Origin: Octopus bimaculoides
Lineage: Eukaryota
Reading direction: 5' to 3'
Length of the DNA stretch: 44,255 nucleotides
NCBI RefSeq assembly: GCF_001194135.2
Contig: NC_068982.1
Span: 84,435,860-84,480,114 of the forward strand
Below the pieces are notes generated by a model. That model made no database searches, was not told the origin of the DNA, and saw nothing but the letters and a program-made list of their open reading frames with translations. The position numbers and the translations under genes are program-made. Below, piece by piece: positions 6,517 through 34,137 of this stretch (position 1 is the stretch's first letter; each line of letters opens with the position of its first letter).

Positions 6517-7582
6517 ACTACAGCTGGAAGCCCTTCCGAACGCCAACCACTCCGAGAGTGTAGTGGGTGCTTTTTATGTGTCAGCGGCACGAGGGCCAGT
6601 CAGGTGGTACTGGCATCGACCACACTTGAATAGTACTTTTTACCTGCCACCGGCACGGGAGCCAGTCAGGCAGCACTGGCAACGACCATGCTCAACTGGT
6701 GCTTTTTATGAGCCACTGGCATGGGAGCCAATTAAGCAGCACTGACAATGACCATACTCGAATGGTGCTTTTTATGTGCCACTGGCATAGTACCAGTCAG
6801 ACAGCACTAGCATCAATCATGCTCAAATGGTGCTTTTTACGTGTCATCGGTATGGGTACCAGTCAGGTGGTACTGGCATCAGCCATGACAATGACTTCAT
6901 TTGACTCAACAGGTCTTCGCAAGCACAGTTTATTACCCAATGTTTGAAGGGTACTCTTAAATGAGCTGGTTGTGCTGCACTGACATAGGCCACGGTTACA
7001 GTCTCACTTGGCTTGCTGGGTCTTTTCAAGCACAGAATATCTCCAAAGGTTTCGGTCACTCATCATCACCTCCACGAGGCCCAACATTTGATGGTTGTGC
7101 TTCAACACCTCATCCCAGGTCTTCCTGGGTCTACCTCTTGCACTGCTAGGATATGACACTTTTTTTACACAGCTGTCCTCATCCATATGCAACACATGAC
7201 CATACCAGCACAACCGTCTCTCTTGCACACCACAACTGATGCTTCTTTTGTCCAACTTTTCTCTCAAGATGCTTACACTCTGTTATGTATGCACACTGAC
7301 ATTACACATCCAGCAGAACGTACTAGCTTCATTTCTTGCAAGCTTACACATGTCCTCAGTAGTCATGGCCCATGTTTCACTGCCATGTAGCATGGCTGTT
7401 CGCACACATGCATCATACAATATACTTTTTACTCTGAGCAAGAGGCCCTTTGTCACCAGCAGAGGCAGGAGCTCTCTGAACTTTGCCCAGGCTATTCTTA
7501 TTCTAGTAGCTATACTCTCAGAGCATTCACCCTCACTACTGACTTGGTCGCCTAGGTAACGGAAGCTGTCAACTACTTCTAG
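6517..7582 (-). mobile_element. RTE LINE 3' fragment lacking the terminal tail
   Basis: Minus peptides RRLCWYGHV and RGRPRKTWDEV; colinear with copies at 121-1129 and 9403-10600. Confidence 0.85.
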
Positions 7583-7829
7583 TTGTATGGGCCAGATGGA
7601 ACTAAGACAGATTTTCTACCCTTTGTACCACCAACTCACACCTGTTTTTATAGGAAAATGGAAATAAAGGACACAATTTTATGATGGAAACACAAACAAG
7701 TACAAGGAGACACTTCCACATACACTCACAAGAAACTTATTTCAGTTTCTACCTGCCAAATCAACTCACAAGGCTTTAGTCAAGCCAGGACTTCAACAGC
7801 AGAAACTTGCATGGAATCTGTGTGTGTAT

Positions 7830-9304: not shown

Positions 9305-9402
9305 AACTGATCAATTCTTTAACCAGTATATTAAACAAAGAAGTGATATTGAACAAGTGTAATAACCCTCCAAAACACAACTATATATATATATATATAT
9401 AT

Positions 9403-11881
9403 ATCATCATAATCATTGTTTAACATCCACTTTCCATGCTAGCATGGGCTGAACGATTTAACTAAGGACTGGCGAATCATATGGCTGTACCAGGCTCCAA
9501 TCTGATCCGGCAGAGTTTCTACAGCTGGATGCCCTTCATTAACACCAACCACTCCGAGAGTGTAGTGAGTGCTTTTATGTGCTACCGGCACGAGGGCCAG
9601 TCTGGCGGTACTGGCAACAGCCATGCTCAAATGGTGTTTTTACGTGCCACCTGCACACGAGTCAGTCGAGCGTTGCTGGCAATGACTTTGATAGAATGTT
9701 TTGTTCACATGCCACCGGCACAGAAGCAAGACTGCTGCTCTGGCAGTGATCCCACTCGGATGGTGCTGTCAGCGCTGCACTGGCACGGGTGCCAATCATC
9801 GAATTTGGTTCAGTTTCGATTTCATTTGCCCTAATAGGTCTTCGCAAGCAGAGTTTAGTGTCCAATGAAGGAAGGTTGGCATGGGTGCCAGTCGTCGAAT
9901 TTGGTTCGATTTCGATTTCAGTCACCTCAACAGGTCTTCGCAAGCAGGGTTTTGTGTCCAATGAAGGAAAGGTACGCATAAGTGGGCTGGCTACACCCCT
10001 GGTAAAGGCCATGGTTCTCACTTGTCTAGCCGGGTCTTCTCAAGCACTGCATATTTCCAAAGGTCTCGGTCACTAGTCATTGCCTCGGTGAGGCCTACCG
10101 TTTGAAGATCGTGCTTCACCACCTCATCCCAGGTCTTCCTGGGTCTACCTCTCCCACAAGTACCCTCAACCGCTAAGCTGTGGCACTTTTTTACACAGCT
10201 ATCCTCATCCATTCTCACCAAATGACCATACCAGCACAACCGTCTCTCTTGCACACCACAACTGATGCTTCCTAGGTTCAACTTTTCTCTCAAGGTACCT
10301 ACACTCTGTTGAGCATGCACACTGACATTACACATCCAGCGGAGTATACTGGCTTCATTCCTTGCGAGCTTACGCATGTCCTCAGCAGTCACGGCCCATG
10401 TTTCACTGCCATGTAGCATGGCTGTTCGTACACATGCGTCATACATCTGCCTTTTAATCTTGACGAGAGGCTCTTTGTCACCAGCAGAGGTAAGAGCTTT
10501 CTGAACTTTGCCCAGGCTATTCTTATTCAAGCAGCTACACTTTCAGCGCACCCTCCCCCGCTACTGACTTGGTCACCTAGGTAATGGAAGCTATCAACTA
10601 ATTCTAGTTTTTCTCCCTGGAATGTGGCAGAAGTTGTTCTCTGCACATTTTCAGTGTTTATTGCTCCTGAGCATCTGCCACATACAAAAACTATCTTCCT
10701 AGTTAGCCTTCCTTCGATATTGCTGCACCTCTTATGTGTCCATAGCTTACACTGGGTACATCTTATAGAGTTTCTACCTACACCTTTTCTACAGTTCGAG
10801 CAGGGCCATCTATCTGAAGGGGTTTGTGGTTTCTCTACTTTCCTACTTATTAGGACTTTGGTTTTAGCTAGGTTGACTCTAAGCCCTTCAATTCTAGTCC
10901 CTGCTTCCACAGCTGAAACTTCTCCTTTAGTTCTGATAGTGACTCAGCAATTAGAGCAAGGTCATCAGCATAGAGGAGCTCCCAGGGGCATCCTGTCTTG
11001 AATTCCTCTGTTATTGCCTGGAGGACTATGATAAATAGAAGGGGGCTGAGGACTGAACCTTGGTGGACCCCTACCTCTACTCGGAATTCTTCACTGTAGT
11101 CGTTGCCAACCCTCACCTTACTGACGGCATACTGTACATGGCTCGCACAGCTCTCACTAACCATTCATCTATTCCTAGTTTCCTCATTGACCACCAGATA
11201 AGGGATCGGGGGACCCTGTCAAAGGCTTTCTCCATATCAATGAAAGCCAGGTACAGAGGTTTATCCCTGGCCAGGTATTTCTCCTGCAGCTGTTTTACCA
11301 GAAATATAACATCAGTGATGCTTTTCCCTGGCACGAATCCAAACTGCATCTCATCTAAACTGACTCGCTCCCTAATTAGTTGGGCTATGACCCTCTTAGT
11401 GACCTTCATTACCTGATCTAACAACTTGATACCTTTGTAATTATTTGTGTCTAAAGTGTCACCTTTACCTTTGTAGCAGATGACTATGGTGCTGCTACAC
11501 CAGTCATTGGGTATGACTCCTTTGTGTATTACCTGGTTAACTATACAGGTGACTAGGCTATAGCCGACACTGCCAGATATTTTGAGCATCTCTGCAGTGA
11601 TTCCTGATGGGCTGGGGGCTTCCCGTGTCTTCATACTCTTGATTGCTTTATCTACCAAGGTACTGTCAATTAGGATAGCTGGTCCCTCTGTTGGGTCGAC
11701 ATTCAGCAGACTCTCTTTCTCCCATTCATTCTCTTTAAGCAACCTTTCATAGTGGCATCTCCAAACCCCTCTCTTTGTAGCCTCATTTAGTGCAAGTGAA
11801 CCATCATCCATGTGGACACATTTCTCTCCTACAACATCACGATTCTCTCTCACACACTGTCTTGCAACACAAAATACTTCA
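9403..11881 (-). mobile_element. RTE LINE, 5'-truncated, RT nearly complete but frameshifted
   Basis: MQFGFVPGKS, FIDMEKAFDRVPR, GVHQGSVLSPLLF, LLYADDLAL, NLAKTK, PHD-like insert, FHYLG, RGRPRKTW; the (GAT)n tail abuts (TA)n at 9382-9402. Confidence 0.95.
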
Positions 11882-12111
11882 GAAAGAAATGAGATTAAAA
11901 ATCCAAGTAAACAATTTATAAGCACTCTGTAGGGATCAAATTTAATTAAGTAAATTGTCCAGTAAAAGCCAATGTTATCCATGTATGCCATAAAATTACT
12001 TTCTGCTGCTACTTGTCCAATTTCTAAATCCAAAGTTCAAATACCAAATAAATTTAGTATAAATTCACAGAGTGAACAATTATACGTTCTTTAATCAGCT
12101 TATGCATGTTT
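11882..12111 (+). repeat. 230-bp segment duplicated at 12382-12611
   Basis: Near-identical sequence (aagaaatgagattaaaaatcc...tatgcatgttt); the first copy ends at a 10-N gap. Confidence 0.9.
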
Positions 12112-12121
12112 NNNNNNNNNN

Positions 12122-12383: not shown

Positions 12384-12829
12384 GAAGAAATGAGATTAAA
12401 AATCCAAGTAAACAATTTATAAGCACTCTGTAGGGATCAAATTTAATTAAGTAAATTGTCCAGTAAAAGCCAATGTTATCCATGTATGCCATAAAATTAC
12501 TTTCTGCTGCTACTTGTCCAATTTCTAAATCCAAAGTTCAAATACCAAATAAATTTAGTATAAATTCACAGAGTGAACAATTATACGTTCTTTAATCAGC
12601 TTATGCATGTTTTAAATTTACTGGCAAATTCCAAAATTCTTTGATGCAGTAATCATGCATATTAATCAATCCTATATTTGATTGACAAAGATTCTACAGA
12701 GATACAGAAATTTAACATCATCCTATCTTTATCAACACAGTAAATTTAGAGAGTTTGTTGAAATGGATTTAACCAATCCACTTAATAATAGTAATAAAGA
12801 TGGCAGTAACTATAATAATGCAAATGATA

Positions 12830-15426: not shown

Positions 15427-15519
15427 TTGGTTCTAATGCCCAAACTAAAATGTTTTTTATATGTACTTTAATAGGGTAGTGTATTACTTTTATTAGGTTG
15501 TGTATGATTGACTAACAGA

Positions 15520-15890
15520 AATGGTGTGTAAGAGCACAAGTGACATAGACTCTCTTAATTGCCCAGGGAGCTCTCTTAAGGTAGTAGATAGTTTCTGCTA
15601 CTTAGATGACCAAATTAGTAATAGTTGTGGATGCTCTAAAAGTATTGTTTCTAGAATAAGAATAGGATGGAGGAAGTTCAGAGAGCTAGTACTTCTACTG
15701 GCAACAAAAGGACTCTCTCTTAAAGTGAAAGGTAGATTAAATGATGTTTGTGTACAAATAGCTATATTCCATGATATGAAGGCTGTATGCTCCATTGGAT
15801 TTGCACCATCAGTGTGCATGAAGAACAAAGCTCAACTGTGCTGAGAGAAAAGTTAGGTATAAGAGGGATTAAATGTGGCATGCAATTCCT
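15520..15890 (+). mobile_element. Old RTE internal fragment
   Basis: LKVVDSFCYL...RIRIGWRKFRELVLLLATKGLSLKVKGRL in ORF 15521-15844. Confidence 0.8.
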
Positions 15891-18440: not shown

Positions 18441-20777
<2,337 letters not shown>

Positions 20778-25519: not shown

Positions 25520-27385
25520 GTGAAAGCAAAACATGGAGTCAAAGGGTCTTAAAGTTAACTTAGCAAAGACCTAAGAAGAGGACAGACAGGAAGCTACAAC
25601 CATCAGGAAAATGGCTCTGCTTGATATGTAGAAAAAGAGTAGGAAGAAATTCCATTCACTGTACACAGCGCAAACTATGGATACATAAAAGGTGCAGTGG
25701 TATCACAGGAAAGTAAATGGAAAGAGAGAGTGGACTTTATCTAAGACATGCACAGGAACAATAAACACAGAACACATGGGACAGATTTTCTTAAATGCCG
25801 AAGAGGTTCACTAGAAATAGTAGATACTTTCTGTTATGCAGGTGAACTAATTATCAGTGGATGAGGATGTTCTGAAAACATAGGATGTAGAATATTCAGA
25901 GAGCTATTGTTTCTGTTGGTAACAAATGGCTTCTCACACAGTGAATGGCAGATTGTACAGTACTTGCATATGAACATTGATGATACATGGTAGTGAAATG
26001 TGGGCCCTAAATGCAGTAGATATGCAAAGGTTAGAAAGGAATGAAGTTAATATGCTCTGCTGGATGTCCTATGCCAGTGTGCATACACAACAAAATGCAA
26101 ATGCATTGAGAGAAAAAAACTAGGCTTAAGGGGTATCAGGTGTATGGTGCAAGAGAGATGACTGCACTGGCATAGTTATGTGATGCATAGAAATGAAGAC
26201 AGCTGCATATAGAAATGCTAATCACTAAATGTGGATAGGACCTTTGAAAGAGGGAGATCCAAGACATCATATGATGATGTAATGAAAAACCTCAAGATGT
26301 TGAGCCTGAAGGAAGAAATGACAAAGGACTAGGGTGACTGGTGATTTGTTATGCCTGAGAAGACCTGATTATCCAGGTAAAAATGAGATCCTAAAAGCCT
26401 ATCACTTTCTGTATGCCCTTGCATTCGAGTTGGCCCCACAACCCATCTTACCAACACCCATCCTTCCATCCTTCTTCTAACTACAACACTAGCTTACCAG
26501 TAGAGATGCACATATTTCATTTACCATACTAGTTTCCCTTTCTCTGGGAGCTACCTTCTCATGTTACTCACCTTGCATTCTCAATATTATGCTATACTAC
26601 TATCGAATACCATCTTATATCAGCCATCACCTCACTCCTCACCCAATAACTCTCTTGCATTACATTCACTCCTACATACCTTAGATCTCTGCCCTTGTCA
26701 CTGAGCACCCTTCCCTCTCTCCCCACTCCTCACACTGCTCATCCCTCTCACCTTTCTGTACTGTCACTTATTCCTCCTCCCTGTCCCACTCCTATTTCCT
26801 TCACTTCCGCCAAACTGATATTCCCATTGACCATGTTCTATTCCCTGCTTGTCATTCATTGCATTATCTATATCCCAATATTCCCTATCTCTAACTGCTT
26901 GTCACTTACCTCATACTCTTGCAAACTTACCCAATCTTCTGTCCCTATACCCCTCACCTGTTGTTCTTTCTTCATCCCTCACATTCACCCTCTTGTACCT
27001 TGAGGGTACTTCATACCACCACCACCACCACTTCTCTTCTTTTCCAGTTGGGGTAGGTATGTATCTTCTCTACAACAAAACACCTGTTCCTATCCCTCAA
27101 TCATACTTTTGCTTCTCAACACCTAACATAAGTCACCTCCCTAAATACTATACATTGATCAGTTAAGGAAGTCATATCTTGCAAGTTACTTGGTGACCTT
27201 ACCAGTTCCAGTACAATGTAAACAGCACCAAGTACACTCTGTAAAGTGTTGGCATTAGGAAGGACATCCAACCATAGAAACCATGCCATAACAGACAATG
27301 GAGCTCGACGCTATCCTCTATCCTGTTGGATTCTCTCAAATCATTCATTCCATGCCAGTATGGAATATGGATGCTAAATGATGAA
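25520..27385 (+). mobile_element. Old RTE LINE (RT end, PHD-like insert, long UTR)
   Basis: MESKGLKVNLAKT, CRKRVGRNSIHCTQRKLWIHKRC, and tail gctaaatgatgaag. Confidence 0.8.
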
Positions 27386-27554: not shown

Positions 27555-28755
27555 ATGCCCTGCTCAGTATGTAGAAAAGGAGTAGGTAGTAACTCTATAA
27601 GATGTACCCGGTGCAAGCTATGGACACATAAGAGGTGCAGCAACATCAAAGGCAGGTTAACTAGCAAGTTAGTTTTTGTTTGTGGCAGATGTTCAGGTGC
27701 AATAAAGACTGCAAACAAACAGGAAACAACTTCTATCTCATTCCAGGGTGAAAAACTAGAGGTAGTCGATAGCTTCCGCTATCTGGGCGACCAAGTTAGT
27801 AGTGGGGGTGGGTGCGCTGAAAGTGTAGCTGCTAGANNNNNNNNNNNNNNNNNNNNNNNNNNNNNNNNNNNNNNNNNNNNNNNNNNNNNNNNNNNNNNNN
27901 NNNNNNNNNNNNNNNNNNNNNNNNNNNNNNNNNNNNNNNNNNNNNNNNNNNNNNNNNNNNNNNNNNNNNNNNNNNNNNNNNNNNNNNNNNNNNNNNNNNN
28001 NNNNNNNNNNNNNNNNNNNNNNNNNNNNNNNNNNNNNNNNNNNNNNNNNNNNNNNNNNNNNNNNNNNNNNNNNNNNNNNNNNNNNNNNNNNNNNNNNNNN
28101 NNNNNNNNNNNNNNNNNNNNNNNNNNNNNNNNNNNNNNNNNNNNNNNNNNNNNNNNNNNNNNNNNNNNNNNNNNNNNNNNNNNNNNNNNNNNNNNNNNNN
28201 NNNNNNNNNNNNNNNNNNNNNNNNNNNNNNNNNNNNNNNNNNNNNNNNNNNNNNNNNNNNNNNNNNNNNNNNNNNNNNNNNNNNNNNNNNNNNNNNNNNN
28301 NNNNNNNNNNNNNNNNNNNNNNNNNNNNNNNNNNNNNNNNNNNNNNNNNNNNNNNNNNNNNNNNNNNNNNNNNNNNNNNNNNNNNNNNNNNNNNNNNNNN
28401 NNNNNNNNNNNNNNNNNNNNNNNNNNNNNNNNNNNNNNNNNNNNNNNNNNNNNNNNNNNNNNNNNNNNNNNNNNNNNNNNNNNNNNNNNNNNNNNNNNNN
28501 NNNNNNNNNNNNNNNNNNNNNNGGCACATAAAAGACACCATTTCGAGCGTGGCCGTTTTCGTGCGGGTGACACGTAAAAGCACCCACTACACTCTCTGAG
28601 TGGTTGGCGTTAGGAAGGGCATCCAGCTGTAGAAACTCTGCCAAATCAGACTGGAGCCTGGTGTTGCCATCCGGTTTCACCAGTCCTCAGTCAAATCGTC
28701 CAACCCATGCTAGCATGGAAAGCGGACGTTAAACGATGATGATGATGATGATGAT
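27555..28755 (+). mobile_element. Young RTE LINE starting at the PHD-like insert; gap at 27837-28522
   Basis: PCSVCRKGVGSNSIRCTRCKLWTHKRC...CGRC, LEVVDSFRYLGD; CpG-rich UTR and (GAT)n tail. Confidence 0.92.
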
Positions 28756-30384: not shown

Positions 30385-31552
30385 TGTGCATGCATTTGTG
30401 GGCACTGAATGCAGGGGATATGTGAGGATTAGAGAAGAATGGCACTGGTATGCGCCAATGAATGTACAATATCAGTGTACATGTATGACAAAATGCAAAT
30501 ATGTTAAAAGAAAAGTTAGGTATAAGAAGAAACAGATGTAGCATGCCAAAGAGAAAACTATGATGGTTTGGTCATATGATGCATATGGATGAGGACAGCT
30601 GAATAAAGAAGTGCCAATCCCTTAAAGAAGATCAAGCTTGTGGAACAGAGAGACCCAGTAAGACAAGGGTTGAAGTGGCAAGGGCAGACCTCAAGATGTT
30701 GAGCTTCATGGAGGAAATGACAAAGGACTGGGACATCTGGTGATATGAGGTTCTTGAGAAGACCTGTCCACCTCAGCAAAACTGAGTTCTGGAAGTGCTG
30801 TGTATATTTTGCTTTCCACTCACGTTACATTGATTCACTTGCACATCCACTCTCACAAACCAAAATTATCTCTCACATGCCCAATGCCTACCTCTTCTCC
30901 TACTCCTGCAGCTGACCTAAACTTGTCATGTCCTCCTCCTGCTGACTGCAACATTACTATCCTGCCACTCTCCCTTCACCCATTGCCTCCTTCACCCCCC
31001 TATCCTTCACCAACTCATGATTCATTGGTCATCACTCTTCAACCCTACCCAACTTATTTACAGTTGCAGGCTGTCCTACCATCCCTTCATCTGCTGCTCC
31101 CCACAGAAGTTTCCAACTCCCTCACACCCATCAACTTCTACCCACTCATGGCCTTGAGGAGGCCACCAAGACACCTCATATCTAATATCTATCTCTTCAC
31201 AATTCCTACTGATCATTCTCACCCTCTTAAACTAAATATGTGTAACCATACGGCTTTACTACAAGAACCTACTATGCTCCTCCATCATACTGTATCCCCT
31301 CAATCCCCAGCATTAAGTTGACTCCCCACTTTTCTCAGGGCTTGTAGTCTTGCAAGCAGCATGATGATCTCATGAGTGCTGGTAGCATGAAAGAAGCACC
31401 CAAAACACTGTAAAGTTGCTGGCATTAGCAAGGGTATCCAGTTGTAGAAAATATGCCAAAGCAAACATTGGAGCATGATGCTATCCTTGGAATTGTCAAC
31501 TCATCCAACCCATACCAGCATGGAACATGAACATAAAATGATGATGATCATC
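30385..31552 (+). mobile_element. Old RTE 3' part
   Basis: ctatgatggtttggtcatatgatgcatatggatgag (R.LRWFGHV equivalent), pyrimidine-rich UTR and (GAT)n tail. Confidence 0.75.
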
Positions 31553-33239: not shown

Positions 33240-34137
33240 AGTTAACATCCATCTTCCATGCATGCATGAGAAAGATGGTTGACAGGAGCTAGCCAGGTAG
33301 AAAAACTACCCTAGGTTACTGTGTCTGTTTTGGCAGGGTTTTTACAGTTGAATGCCCTTCCTAACACCAACCACTTTGCAGAGTGCTTTTTAGTGCTTTT
33401 TATATGGCACTAGCATAGGTGAGGTTAGTTTTGGTATGATTTTTACAGCTGGATGCCCTTCCAAATGCTAACCACTTTACAGTGTGGACTAGATGCATTT
33501 TACATGGCACCAGCACTGTAAGGTCACCAAGTAACTCGCAAGACAAGGAATTATGAGAGGGGCAGAGGCATTTGAGACAGGGAACTTGTGTCAGTGGATG
33601 AAAGGTTAGAGTGTGACAAAGAGATAGCAGCAGCAGAAACAGGTGGCTAGCTATAGAGGAGACACATGGTTACCAATGAGAGAGAAAGAGCGCAGTTAGG
33701 TGTTGCCAAGAAGGTGTAAGTAGGGAGTGGGGATTGCAGTAACTGGAAAAAACCTGGGTAGAAAAATAGGGCGGGGGTAGCAATGCAATGAGGGCAGGAA
33801 AGAGGTTTCGAAGACAATCATAGTTTAGAAGAGGAGATGTAGTTCAGTTTCTTGGGGTAGAGTGTGTGAAAAGTTTGTTGTTACATGTGGGTGGGACACA
33901 ATGCTTCACGCACTCAGTTTTGCTGACATGGTTGGGTCTTCTCTAGAACCTCATATTGCCAAACATCTTGGTCCATTGTTGTTTCCTCTGTGAGCCCCAA
34001 CATCCTAAGATTGGTCCTCAGCACTTCATCCATGTTTTCCTGGGTCACCCTCTTCCACAGGTACCATCCACTTTCAGTGACTGGCACTTCTGTATACAGC
34101 TGTTTTCACTCATACACATCACATGTGTGAAATACCT
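33240..34137 (-). mobile_element. Old RTE 3' part
   Basis: Minus strand carries the RG.PRKTW equivalent at ~34030-34060 and a UTR ending at ~33240. Confidence 0.7.

Follow-up and report, generated by a model that had tools for sequence, protein, structure and literature searches.

A PHD-type zinc finger inside the reverse transcriptase palm of a branch of RTE-type LINEs, traced from relic copies in Octopus bimaculoides

PHD domains of the CR1/L2 group of long interspersed nuclear elements (LINEs) were reportedly described by Kapitonov and Jurka in 2003. In these elements the PHD finger is found in open reading frame (ORF) 1 or at the N-terminus of the ORF, and a general help in chromatin targeting was proposed for it; as of 2014 there were no functional studies of LINE PHD fingers, and the structure of ORF2 was described as highly constrained (PMC4120745). 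In the R2 element of Bombyx, an R2-specific insertion named 6a, located between motifs 6 and 7 of the reverse transcriptase (RT), reads upstream target DNA, and its deletion inhibits nicking; this insertion was reported as unique to R2 (PMC10499050). Two vertebrate R2 structures show the 6a loop wedged into the distortion of the target DNA (PMC12180492). L1 ORF2p and R2 unzip the target duplex with a zinc finger located at the C-terminus (PMC7617806). The element examined here lies at about 9.4-11.88 kb (minus strand) of a 44,255-nucleotide stretch of the Octopus bimaculoides genome (contig NC_068982.1, positions 84,435,860 to 84,480,114), referred to as the window. It is a 5'-truncated, frameshifted RTE-like LINE in which two reading-frame fragments match the Pfam profile RVT_1. 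The original prediction, made from the letters of the window, placed a PHD-type C4HC3 zinc finger inside its RT. As judged from sequence comparison and predicted structure, the module is a genuine PHD-type C4HC3 finger, and alignment identifies it as an insertion of roughly 65 residues in the palm loop between RT motifs 6 and 7.

The element is read as frameshifted because its YADD motif (ORF 10868-11164) sits upstream in a neighbouring frame. Despite the frameshifts, the module and both flanking RT motifs (6 and 7) are found in one frame, the ORF at 10527-10910 (minus strand), whose stop-free translation contains GLRVNLAKTKVLISRKVEKPQTPSDRWPCSNCRKGVGRNSIRCTQCKLWTHKRCSNIEGRLTRKIVFVCGRCSGAINTENVQRTTSATFQGEKLELVDSFHYLGDQVSSGGGC. 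The finger within it reads CSNC-x10-CTQC-KLWT-H-KR-C-x14-CGRC, and the pattern C-x2-C-x10-C-x2-C-x4-H-x2-C-x14-C-x2-C corresponds exactly to positions 10671-10802 (minus strand). It is joined to motif 6 by a linker of 17 residues and to motif 7 (LELVDSFHYLG) by one of 27 residues. In homologues an apurinic/apyrimidinic endonuclease (APE) domain precedes the RT; no endonuclease domain is present in the window copy because of 5' truncation at about 11880.

Two of the checks proposed with the prediction were a profile comparison covering PHD, RING and FYVE and a structure prediction; both were carried out. Residues 37-80 of the window ORF matched positions 1-47 of the 47-position Pfam PHD profile (PF00628) with E=1.2e-4 and 22.5 bits, a score slightly below the Pfam gathering cut-off of 24 bits; the intact homologue P0006 was above it (29.8 bits). 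Among 36 mostly full-length homologues, 35 matched the PHD profile at E<=0.01 (best 6.5e-8). None of the 36 matched FYVE or RINGv, and weak matches to zf-RING_16 (three sequences) and C1 (six) were confined to a minority. AlphaFold2, run on the window ORF with a 52-sequence alignment, gave a predicted local distance difference test (pLDDT) score of 89-96 over the finger residues. When this model was compared with the PDB by Foldseek, 48 of the top 50 matches were PHD fingers, one was a FYVE and one a C1 domain. The PHD fingers matched include those of ARID5, TAF3, BPTF, ING4/5, BHC80 and MOZ, and the best fold match was TAF3 (template modelling score of 0.61 on the target, root-mean-square deviation of 2.1 A, 30% identity). 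The probabilities of the best matches are close to 1; their E-values are modest (0.03-0.3), which is expected because the domain has 45 residues. A cross-brace two-zinc fold is predicted for the module, zinc itself being absent from the model. In addition, all 110 modules compared have an aromatic residue, Phe or Tyr, two positions ahead of ligand 7. The claimed C4HC3 identity was thus borne out by profile, by predicted fold and by the aromatics that had been named. Identification as a RING, RING-CH, FYVE or C1 domain was rejected, as the profile matches are absent or weak and the Foldseek top 50 are nearly all PHD.

Further searches revealed that the module is widespread. A word-indexed search with the RT-PHD region returned 1345 proteins, the best of which is an Octopus bimaculoides protein with 84% identity. 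Many of these proteins are 1040-1070 amino acids long and contain Exo_endo_phos, RVT_1 and PHD domains; carriers include Octopus among the molluscs, the cnidarian Hydractinia and the catfish Neoarius. An exhaustive phmmer search with a 127-residue fragment against 1.84 billion cluster representatives (50% identity) gave 1719 matches at E<=1e-3, 398 of them at E<=1e-10. Among the 120 best homologues, 117 contain the motif and 108 show the exact 10/4/14 spacing; of the three without the motif, two have a single mutated ligand and one is a member of a subgroup with H-x4-C spacing. In 110 non-redundant modules the eight zinc ligands, the preceding Pro (position 0) and Trp21, two residues before the His, are invariant. 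The same residues are invariant in the 36-sequence alignment, level with YADD, although the sequences are just 40-55% identical. Further invariant residues that are not ligands include G7, G9, N11, G31 and L33. Mean column identity is 0.61 for the PHD finger (0.52 without its ligands), compared with 0.69 for the RT core, 0.54 for the APE endonuclease and 0.45 for the C-terminal region; the two linkers beside the finger are the least conserved (about 0.35). By these comparisons the module is a family trait under strong constraint. The evidence for constraint is the invariance of the ligands across phyla in intact ORFs elsewhere. The prediction had drawn the same conclusion from copies of different ages in the window; the conclusion stood, but the decayed copies do not serve as its evidence, since a module that persists in dead copies tells no more than that it was present in their source elements.

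The H-x4-C subgroup (P0447, P0465, P0467, P0469 and P0106) represents a variant ligand geometry inside the clade. Its members have a two-residue insertion after the His (W-V-H-G-x-x-K-C), and in some of them the loop leading to ligands 7 and 8 is longer as well.

Comparison with PHD-less relatives established how the finger is placed. A BovB ORF2 fragment used as a query retrieved real Bos and Ovis proteins about 90% identical to it, for which the domain annotation gives RVT_1 only and no PHD. Before and after the finger BovB is collinear with the carriers, and exactly at the finger it has a gap of about 67 residues: the alignment stops after KTKIMASGP and picks up again some 20 residues ahead of motif 7. 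The BLASTP alignment of P0006 with a BovB protein (31% identity over 254 residues, E=1e-35) ends at KTKIM(I/A)SGP. The finger is also absent from more distant full-length relatives found by profile search (P0509-P0522, 32-38% identity). The distance from YADD to YLG is 125-140 residues in every carrier and 63-68 residues in the PHD-less relatives, and the spacing of motifs 6 and 7 is about 85 residues in carriers compared with about 20 in BovB and the other PHD-less relatives. Like the carriers, PHD-less RTEs (BovB of ruminants; P0509-P0522) have one long ORF that encodes an AP-endonuclease at the N-terminus and an RT, are collinear through the RT and the post-RT region, and have no C-terminal Cys/His knuckle; unlike the carriers, they have no insertion of about 65 residues in the motif 6-7 loop. 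The finger had been described as inserted in the RT palm/thumb. Its location within the RT, with YADD/motif 6 on one side and the YLG motif 7 on the other, is confirmed. Both flanking motifs belong to the palm, however, which makes the insertion site the motif 6-7 (6a) loop and not a palm/thumb junction.

A maximum-likelihood tree was built from RTE-like sequences with the trait columns removed, using a quick search and a limited outgroup. It places the 28 carriers on one side of a branch with a Shimodaira-Hasegawa-like approximate likelihood ratio (SH-aLRT) support of 97, so that the trait needs a single change. In this sequence-based comparison the PHD carriers are one monophyletic branch of RTE-type LINEs with a single origin, in which the module is an integral and obligatory part of the RT. 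A full-length carrier ORF has about 1040-1070 residues and comprises the AP-endonuclease (PF03372), the RT (PF00078) with the embedded PHD finger, and a thumb/C-terminal region. In the 36-sequence alignment of carriers, no invariant Cys/His or CCHC-like pattern was found after motif 7. The predicted full-length fold matches the endonuclease and RT of L1 ORF2p, with 16-17% identity to L1 ORF2p in the structural alignment. By sequence the carrier RT is closer to RTE/BovB than to L1, and the carriers are assigned to the RTE group as a whole, with no sub-clade name (RTE, RTEX or other).

Like the 6a insertion of R2, the module is located between RT motifs 6 and 7, as found from the ORF and from the alignment. 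From this loop position we infer that the insertion site is the same as the R2 6a site. The two insertions themselves differ: 6a is a short basic loop (DGHRKK) in a site-specific element of the restriction-like endonuclease (RLE) type, whereas the RTE insertion is a predicted two-zinc domain of 44 residues in an APE-type element. As zinc modules of LINE proteins, the C-terminal CCHC finger of L1 ORF2p and the zinc knuckle of R2 may also be compared with it. These handle target DNA in target-primed reverse transcription (TPRT), but they have another fold, a C-terminal position and one zinc rather than two, and no homology is implied. The full-length AlphaFold model of a carrier (pLDDT 78) resembles L1 ORF2p and R2 overall. 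Across residues 771-860 the pLDDT is 85-91 and no low-confidence linker surrounds the finger; in this model, therefore, the confident linkers suggest that the position of the finger is fixed rather than tethered. The module has a mean net charge of +5.6 (+10 in the window copy), while the aligned segment of Pygopus has -6, and its first 28 residues contain on average about 4 Lys/Arg and 0.3 Asp/Glu.

Our favoured reading, tentatively held and rated at somewhat short of an even chance, is that the basic PHD finger acts in target-site engagement by contact with DNA or the nucleosome. It is favoured because the R2 6a site is apparently shared, because RTEs are without a C-terminal zinc knuckle and because the finger is strongly basic. 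During TPRT the finger would contact target DNA, possibly nucleosomal, at the target site through its basic surface and an exposed, conserved pair of aromatics, and in this way it would place the nick at the RT active site or stabilise it there. Several points weigh against this proposal. The equivalence with R2 6a is topological, meaning the same loop, and is drawn from an element that is not of the APE type. BovB and other RTEs transpose without such a module, which is therefore not needed for the basic reaction. Moreover, the nearest relatives of the module in sequence and structure are almost all readers of methylated lysine 4 of histone H3 (H3K4me) and not DNA binders.

This last point leads to a close rival, pure H3K4me reading, which we regard as possible but on balance doubtful. 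It develops the suggestion made with the prediction that a chromatin-reading finger could steer integration, for example into gene bodies. By binding the H3K4me2/me3 tail, the finger would hold the RT and endonuclease at active chromatin and so bias the landing sites of new copies. Such tethering would resemble the chromodomain integrases of chromoviruses and the LEDGF-tethered integrases of lentiviruses. In a search of the module profile against the PDB, the Pygopus PHD finger was best (E=3e-7), followed by KDM5B, PHF23, PHF13, PHF2, TAF3 and BPTF, all of them H3K4me readers by the names of their PDB entries. Many of the top Foldseek matches are complexes with an H3K4me3 peptide. Like the fingers of Pygopus and TAF3, the module has a predicted C4HC3 cross-brace, a [Y/W]-x-C start, a Trp two residues before the His, and a Val and a small residue in the pocket floor; TAF3 shares the W-x-C form of this start. 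In the hidden Markov model alignment the module aromatic at position -1, V8, S12 and W21 fall on Y341, V350, A356 and W366 of hPYGO1, and these positions are kept in the 110 modules (Tyr, Phe or Trp in 97, Val in 101, Ser in 106 and Trp in all). The four hPYGO1 residues form the walls and base of the K4me2 cavity, and the W366E mutation abolishes binding (PMC2726290). The cellular fingers, however, are acidic and use Asp/Glu for the contacts with K4 and R2 of the histone tail, whereas the RTE module is without these residues and strongly basic. The Asp lip of Pygopus (D352) falls in a two-residue stretch absent from the module, and the position matching E360, which binds H3R2, is neutral (Ser, Thr, Gln or Asn). 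The H3 tail is basic, as is the module (+5.6 against -6 in Pygopus), and a Trp at the pocket position is generic PHD consensus and thus weak evidence for reading. Because the module is basic and without the acidic residues of H3-tail readers, direct contact with DNA or RNA is at least as likely as chromatin reading. Target engagement by DNA contact and H3K4me reading could coexist. A broader formulation, in which a branch of metazoan LINEs has a palm-embedded chromatin reader that reads H3K4 methylation, with or without nucleosomal DNA, during TPRT and so directs insertions to one chromatin state, strikes us as more doubtful still. If true, this would be the first case in which a chromatin mark guides the integration of a non-LTR retrotransposon.

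A role of the finger internal to the element, with no direct part at the target, appears unlikely. As a structural or partner module it would stabilise the palm/thumb or bind the 3' end of the element's own RNA or a host protein. The confident, continuous linkers of the full-length model suggest a tight integration into the RT, and the invariant G7, G9, N11, G31 and L33 could be packing contacts. In addition, an RTE element has to recognise the microsatellite or stem-loop at its own 3' end (PMC9115989). On the other hand, the two conserved aromatics occupy positions that are surface-exposed in the ligand pocket of solved PHD fingers, PHD-less RTEs fold and function without the module, and in R2 the template RNA is recognised by RT extensions other than 6a (PMC10499050). 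It is extremely improbable that the module is an artefact, be it a Cys/His pattern arisen by chance, a chimera produced by the assembly, or the PHD exon of a host gene that a single copy has picked up. The window does contain seven assembly gaps, with a duplicated segment beside one of them. Nevertheless, the module occupies the same position in four window copies and in 117 of the 120 best homologues, it is in frame with both flanking RT motifs, and 1719 clusters at 50% identity match the fragment. The C4HC3 pattern did not occur once in 300 order-2 Markov simulations of the window, and a chance motif was rejected on this count. The artefact explanation as a whole is refuted by the homologue conservation, the simulations and the cluster search.

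CR1/L2 LINEs also encode a PHD finger, and the ORF1 finger that had been cited as known background is confirmed by the literature (PMC4120745). Theirs, however, is a separate shuffled domain, whereas that of the RTE group is embedded in the catalytic RT. The prediction had been accompanied by the remark that no PHD finger spliced into an ORF2 RT was known to its author, and likewise no published description of a PHD finger inside a LINE RT was found in the full-text literature, Repbase Reports and Dfam notes being outside that search. For the brain-expressed octopus element RTE-2_OV, an endonuclease, an RT and a "C2H2 Znf" called "rare in RTE" have been reported, in a text that swaps the N- and C-terminal labels (PMC9115989). 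This C2H2 zinc finger may be the PHD module under another name. The RT-PHD architecture is visible in the precomputed Pfam annotations of public proteins and is therefore unreported rather than hidden. The usual view of LINE RTs is of a structure under constraint, to which accessory domains are added terminally or in ORF1. In the carriers a complete reader-type domain lies inside the palm; its conservation is on a par with that of the catalytic core, and it marks out a large clade with members from molluscs, cnidarians and fish. It is also found in the loop with which R2 grips its target, in a LINE group without the DNA-opening zinc knuckle of L1 and R2. Given this location and the missing knuckle, how APE-type LINEs other than L1 engage chromatin becomes directly testable, as does the question of whether a polymerase itself can encode a bias in insertion site. 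The finding is also relevant to LINE proteins as RNA-templated gene-insertion tools, and to annotation, because RT-PHD fusion gene models in invertebrate genomes are transposon relics.

The features of the window copy and the other copies of the module are listed in the table. A relaxed C4HC3 expression applied to the six-frame translation of the window gave just two matches, 10671-10802 (minus strand) and 27561-27692 (plus strand), the latter at the homologous position of its own element copy. The coordinates first given matched exactly for these two intact copies; for the two decayed copies they were approximate (about 19265-19410 and 25625-25770). In the fourth, older copy (near 25618-25750, plus strand) ligand 4 is changed from Cys to Arg, an in-frame stop is present, and ligands 7 and 8 are lost. 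The copies in this window are dead relics of PHD-bearing RTE-type elements.

Table. Features of the RTE-like element at about 9.4-11.88 kb and further copies of the PHD module in the window
Feature	Coordinates	Strand	State and basis
PHD-type C4HC3 zinc finger (CSNC...CTQC KLWTH KRC...FVCGRC)	10671..10802	-	44 codons, intact; regular expression on six-frame translation
Open frame: RT motif 6 (RVNLAKTK), linker, PHD finger, linker, RT motif 7 (LELVDSFHYLG)	10527..10910	-	ORF list; alignment with homologues and BovB
RT motifs 4-5 (GVHQGSVLSPLLF ... LLYADD)	10868..11164	-	Pfam RVT_1 E=3e-10, profile positions 107-182; frame inspection
RT N-terminal half (fingers and palm motifs 0-3)	11113..11880	-	Pfam RVT_1 E=5e-10; frames
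Post-RT thumb and C-terminal region	10018..10530	-	One in-frame stop, one frameshift; ORF end at 10018; collinear with homologues and BovB
Probable 3' untranslated region of the copy	9382..10017	-	Boundary inferred; Tandem Repeats Finder
Second intact PHD module	27561..27692	+	Element 5'-truncated just before Cys1; 3' end cut by assembly gap 27837-28522
PHD module of third copy	19269..19402 (approx.)	+	8/8 ligand codons recognisable, two frameshifts; tblastn, frames; element about 18688-20040
PHD module of fourth, older copy	25618..25750 (approx.)	+	Decayed; tblastn, frames; element about 25542-26380

When a Cys/His motif was sought in the post-RT region at 10018..10530 (minus strand), none was found. 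The presumed 3' untranslated region of the same copy has a 96-bp unit present twice at 9781-9969 (86% match, Tandem Repeats Finder) and ends in a (TA)11 microsatellite at 9382-9404, which fits the microsatellite tails reported for RTE elements.

The surrounding region is LINE-saturated and gapped. Searches by tblastn with element fragments revealed at least ten RTE-like pieces within the 44 kb; they occur on either strand, most are 3' ends with a truncated 5' side, and four reach the module. Five 3' fragments stop short of it at their 5' end (617-1124, 7004-7585, 15515-15885, 30399-30764 and 33932-34134), and the fragment at 2069-2530 consists of the RT N-terminal half only and adjoins an assembly gap. 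No PHD-less copy could be demonstrated among these other RTE fragments of the window, which end before the module or cover other parts. The seven N runs in the window total 3254 bases. Two copies of a stretch of about 150 bp, which encodes MDLEIGQVAAESNFMAYMDNIGFYWTIYLIKFDPYRVLINCLLGFLISFL, lie about 500 bp apart (11885-12033 and 12385-12534); they are 100% identical, and the N run at 12112-12121 separates them. This is probably an assembly duplication and not biology.

Some homologues are filed under names other than those of animals, namely a Herbaspirillum metagenome-assembled genome (MAG) (P0003), a Terriglobia MAG (P0470), Mycolicibacterium (P0145) and Babesia bigemina (P0224). These animal LINE proteins under bacterial or protist names are likely due to contamination of the assemblies with host DNA. 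Fusions of LINE and host gene were also seen in the models P0001, P0025, P0134 and P0521; the fused models are an Octopus protein with a LETM1 domain, a catfish "slc22a21 isoform X2", a Bos "IST1 homolog isoform X2" and a catfish immunoglobulin-domain protein. They are annotation chimeras and could mislead surveys of domain architecture.

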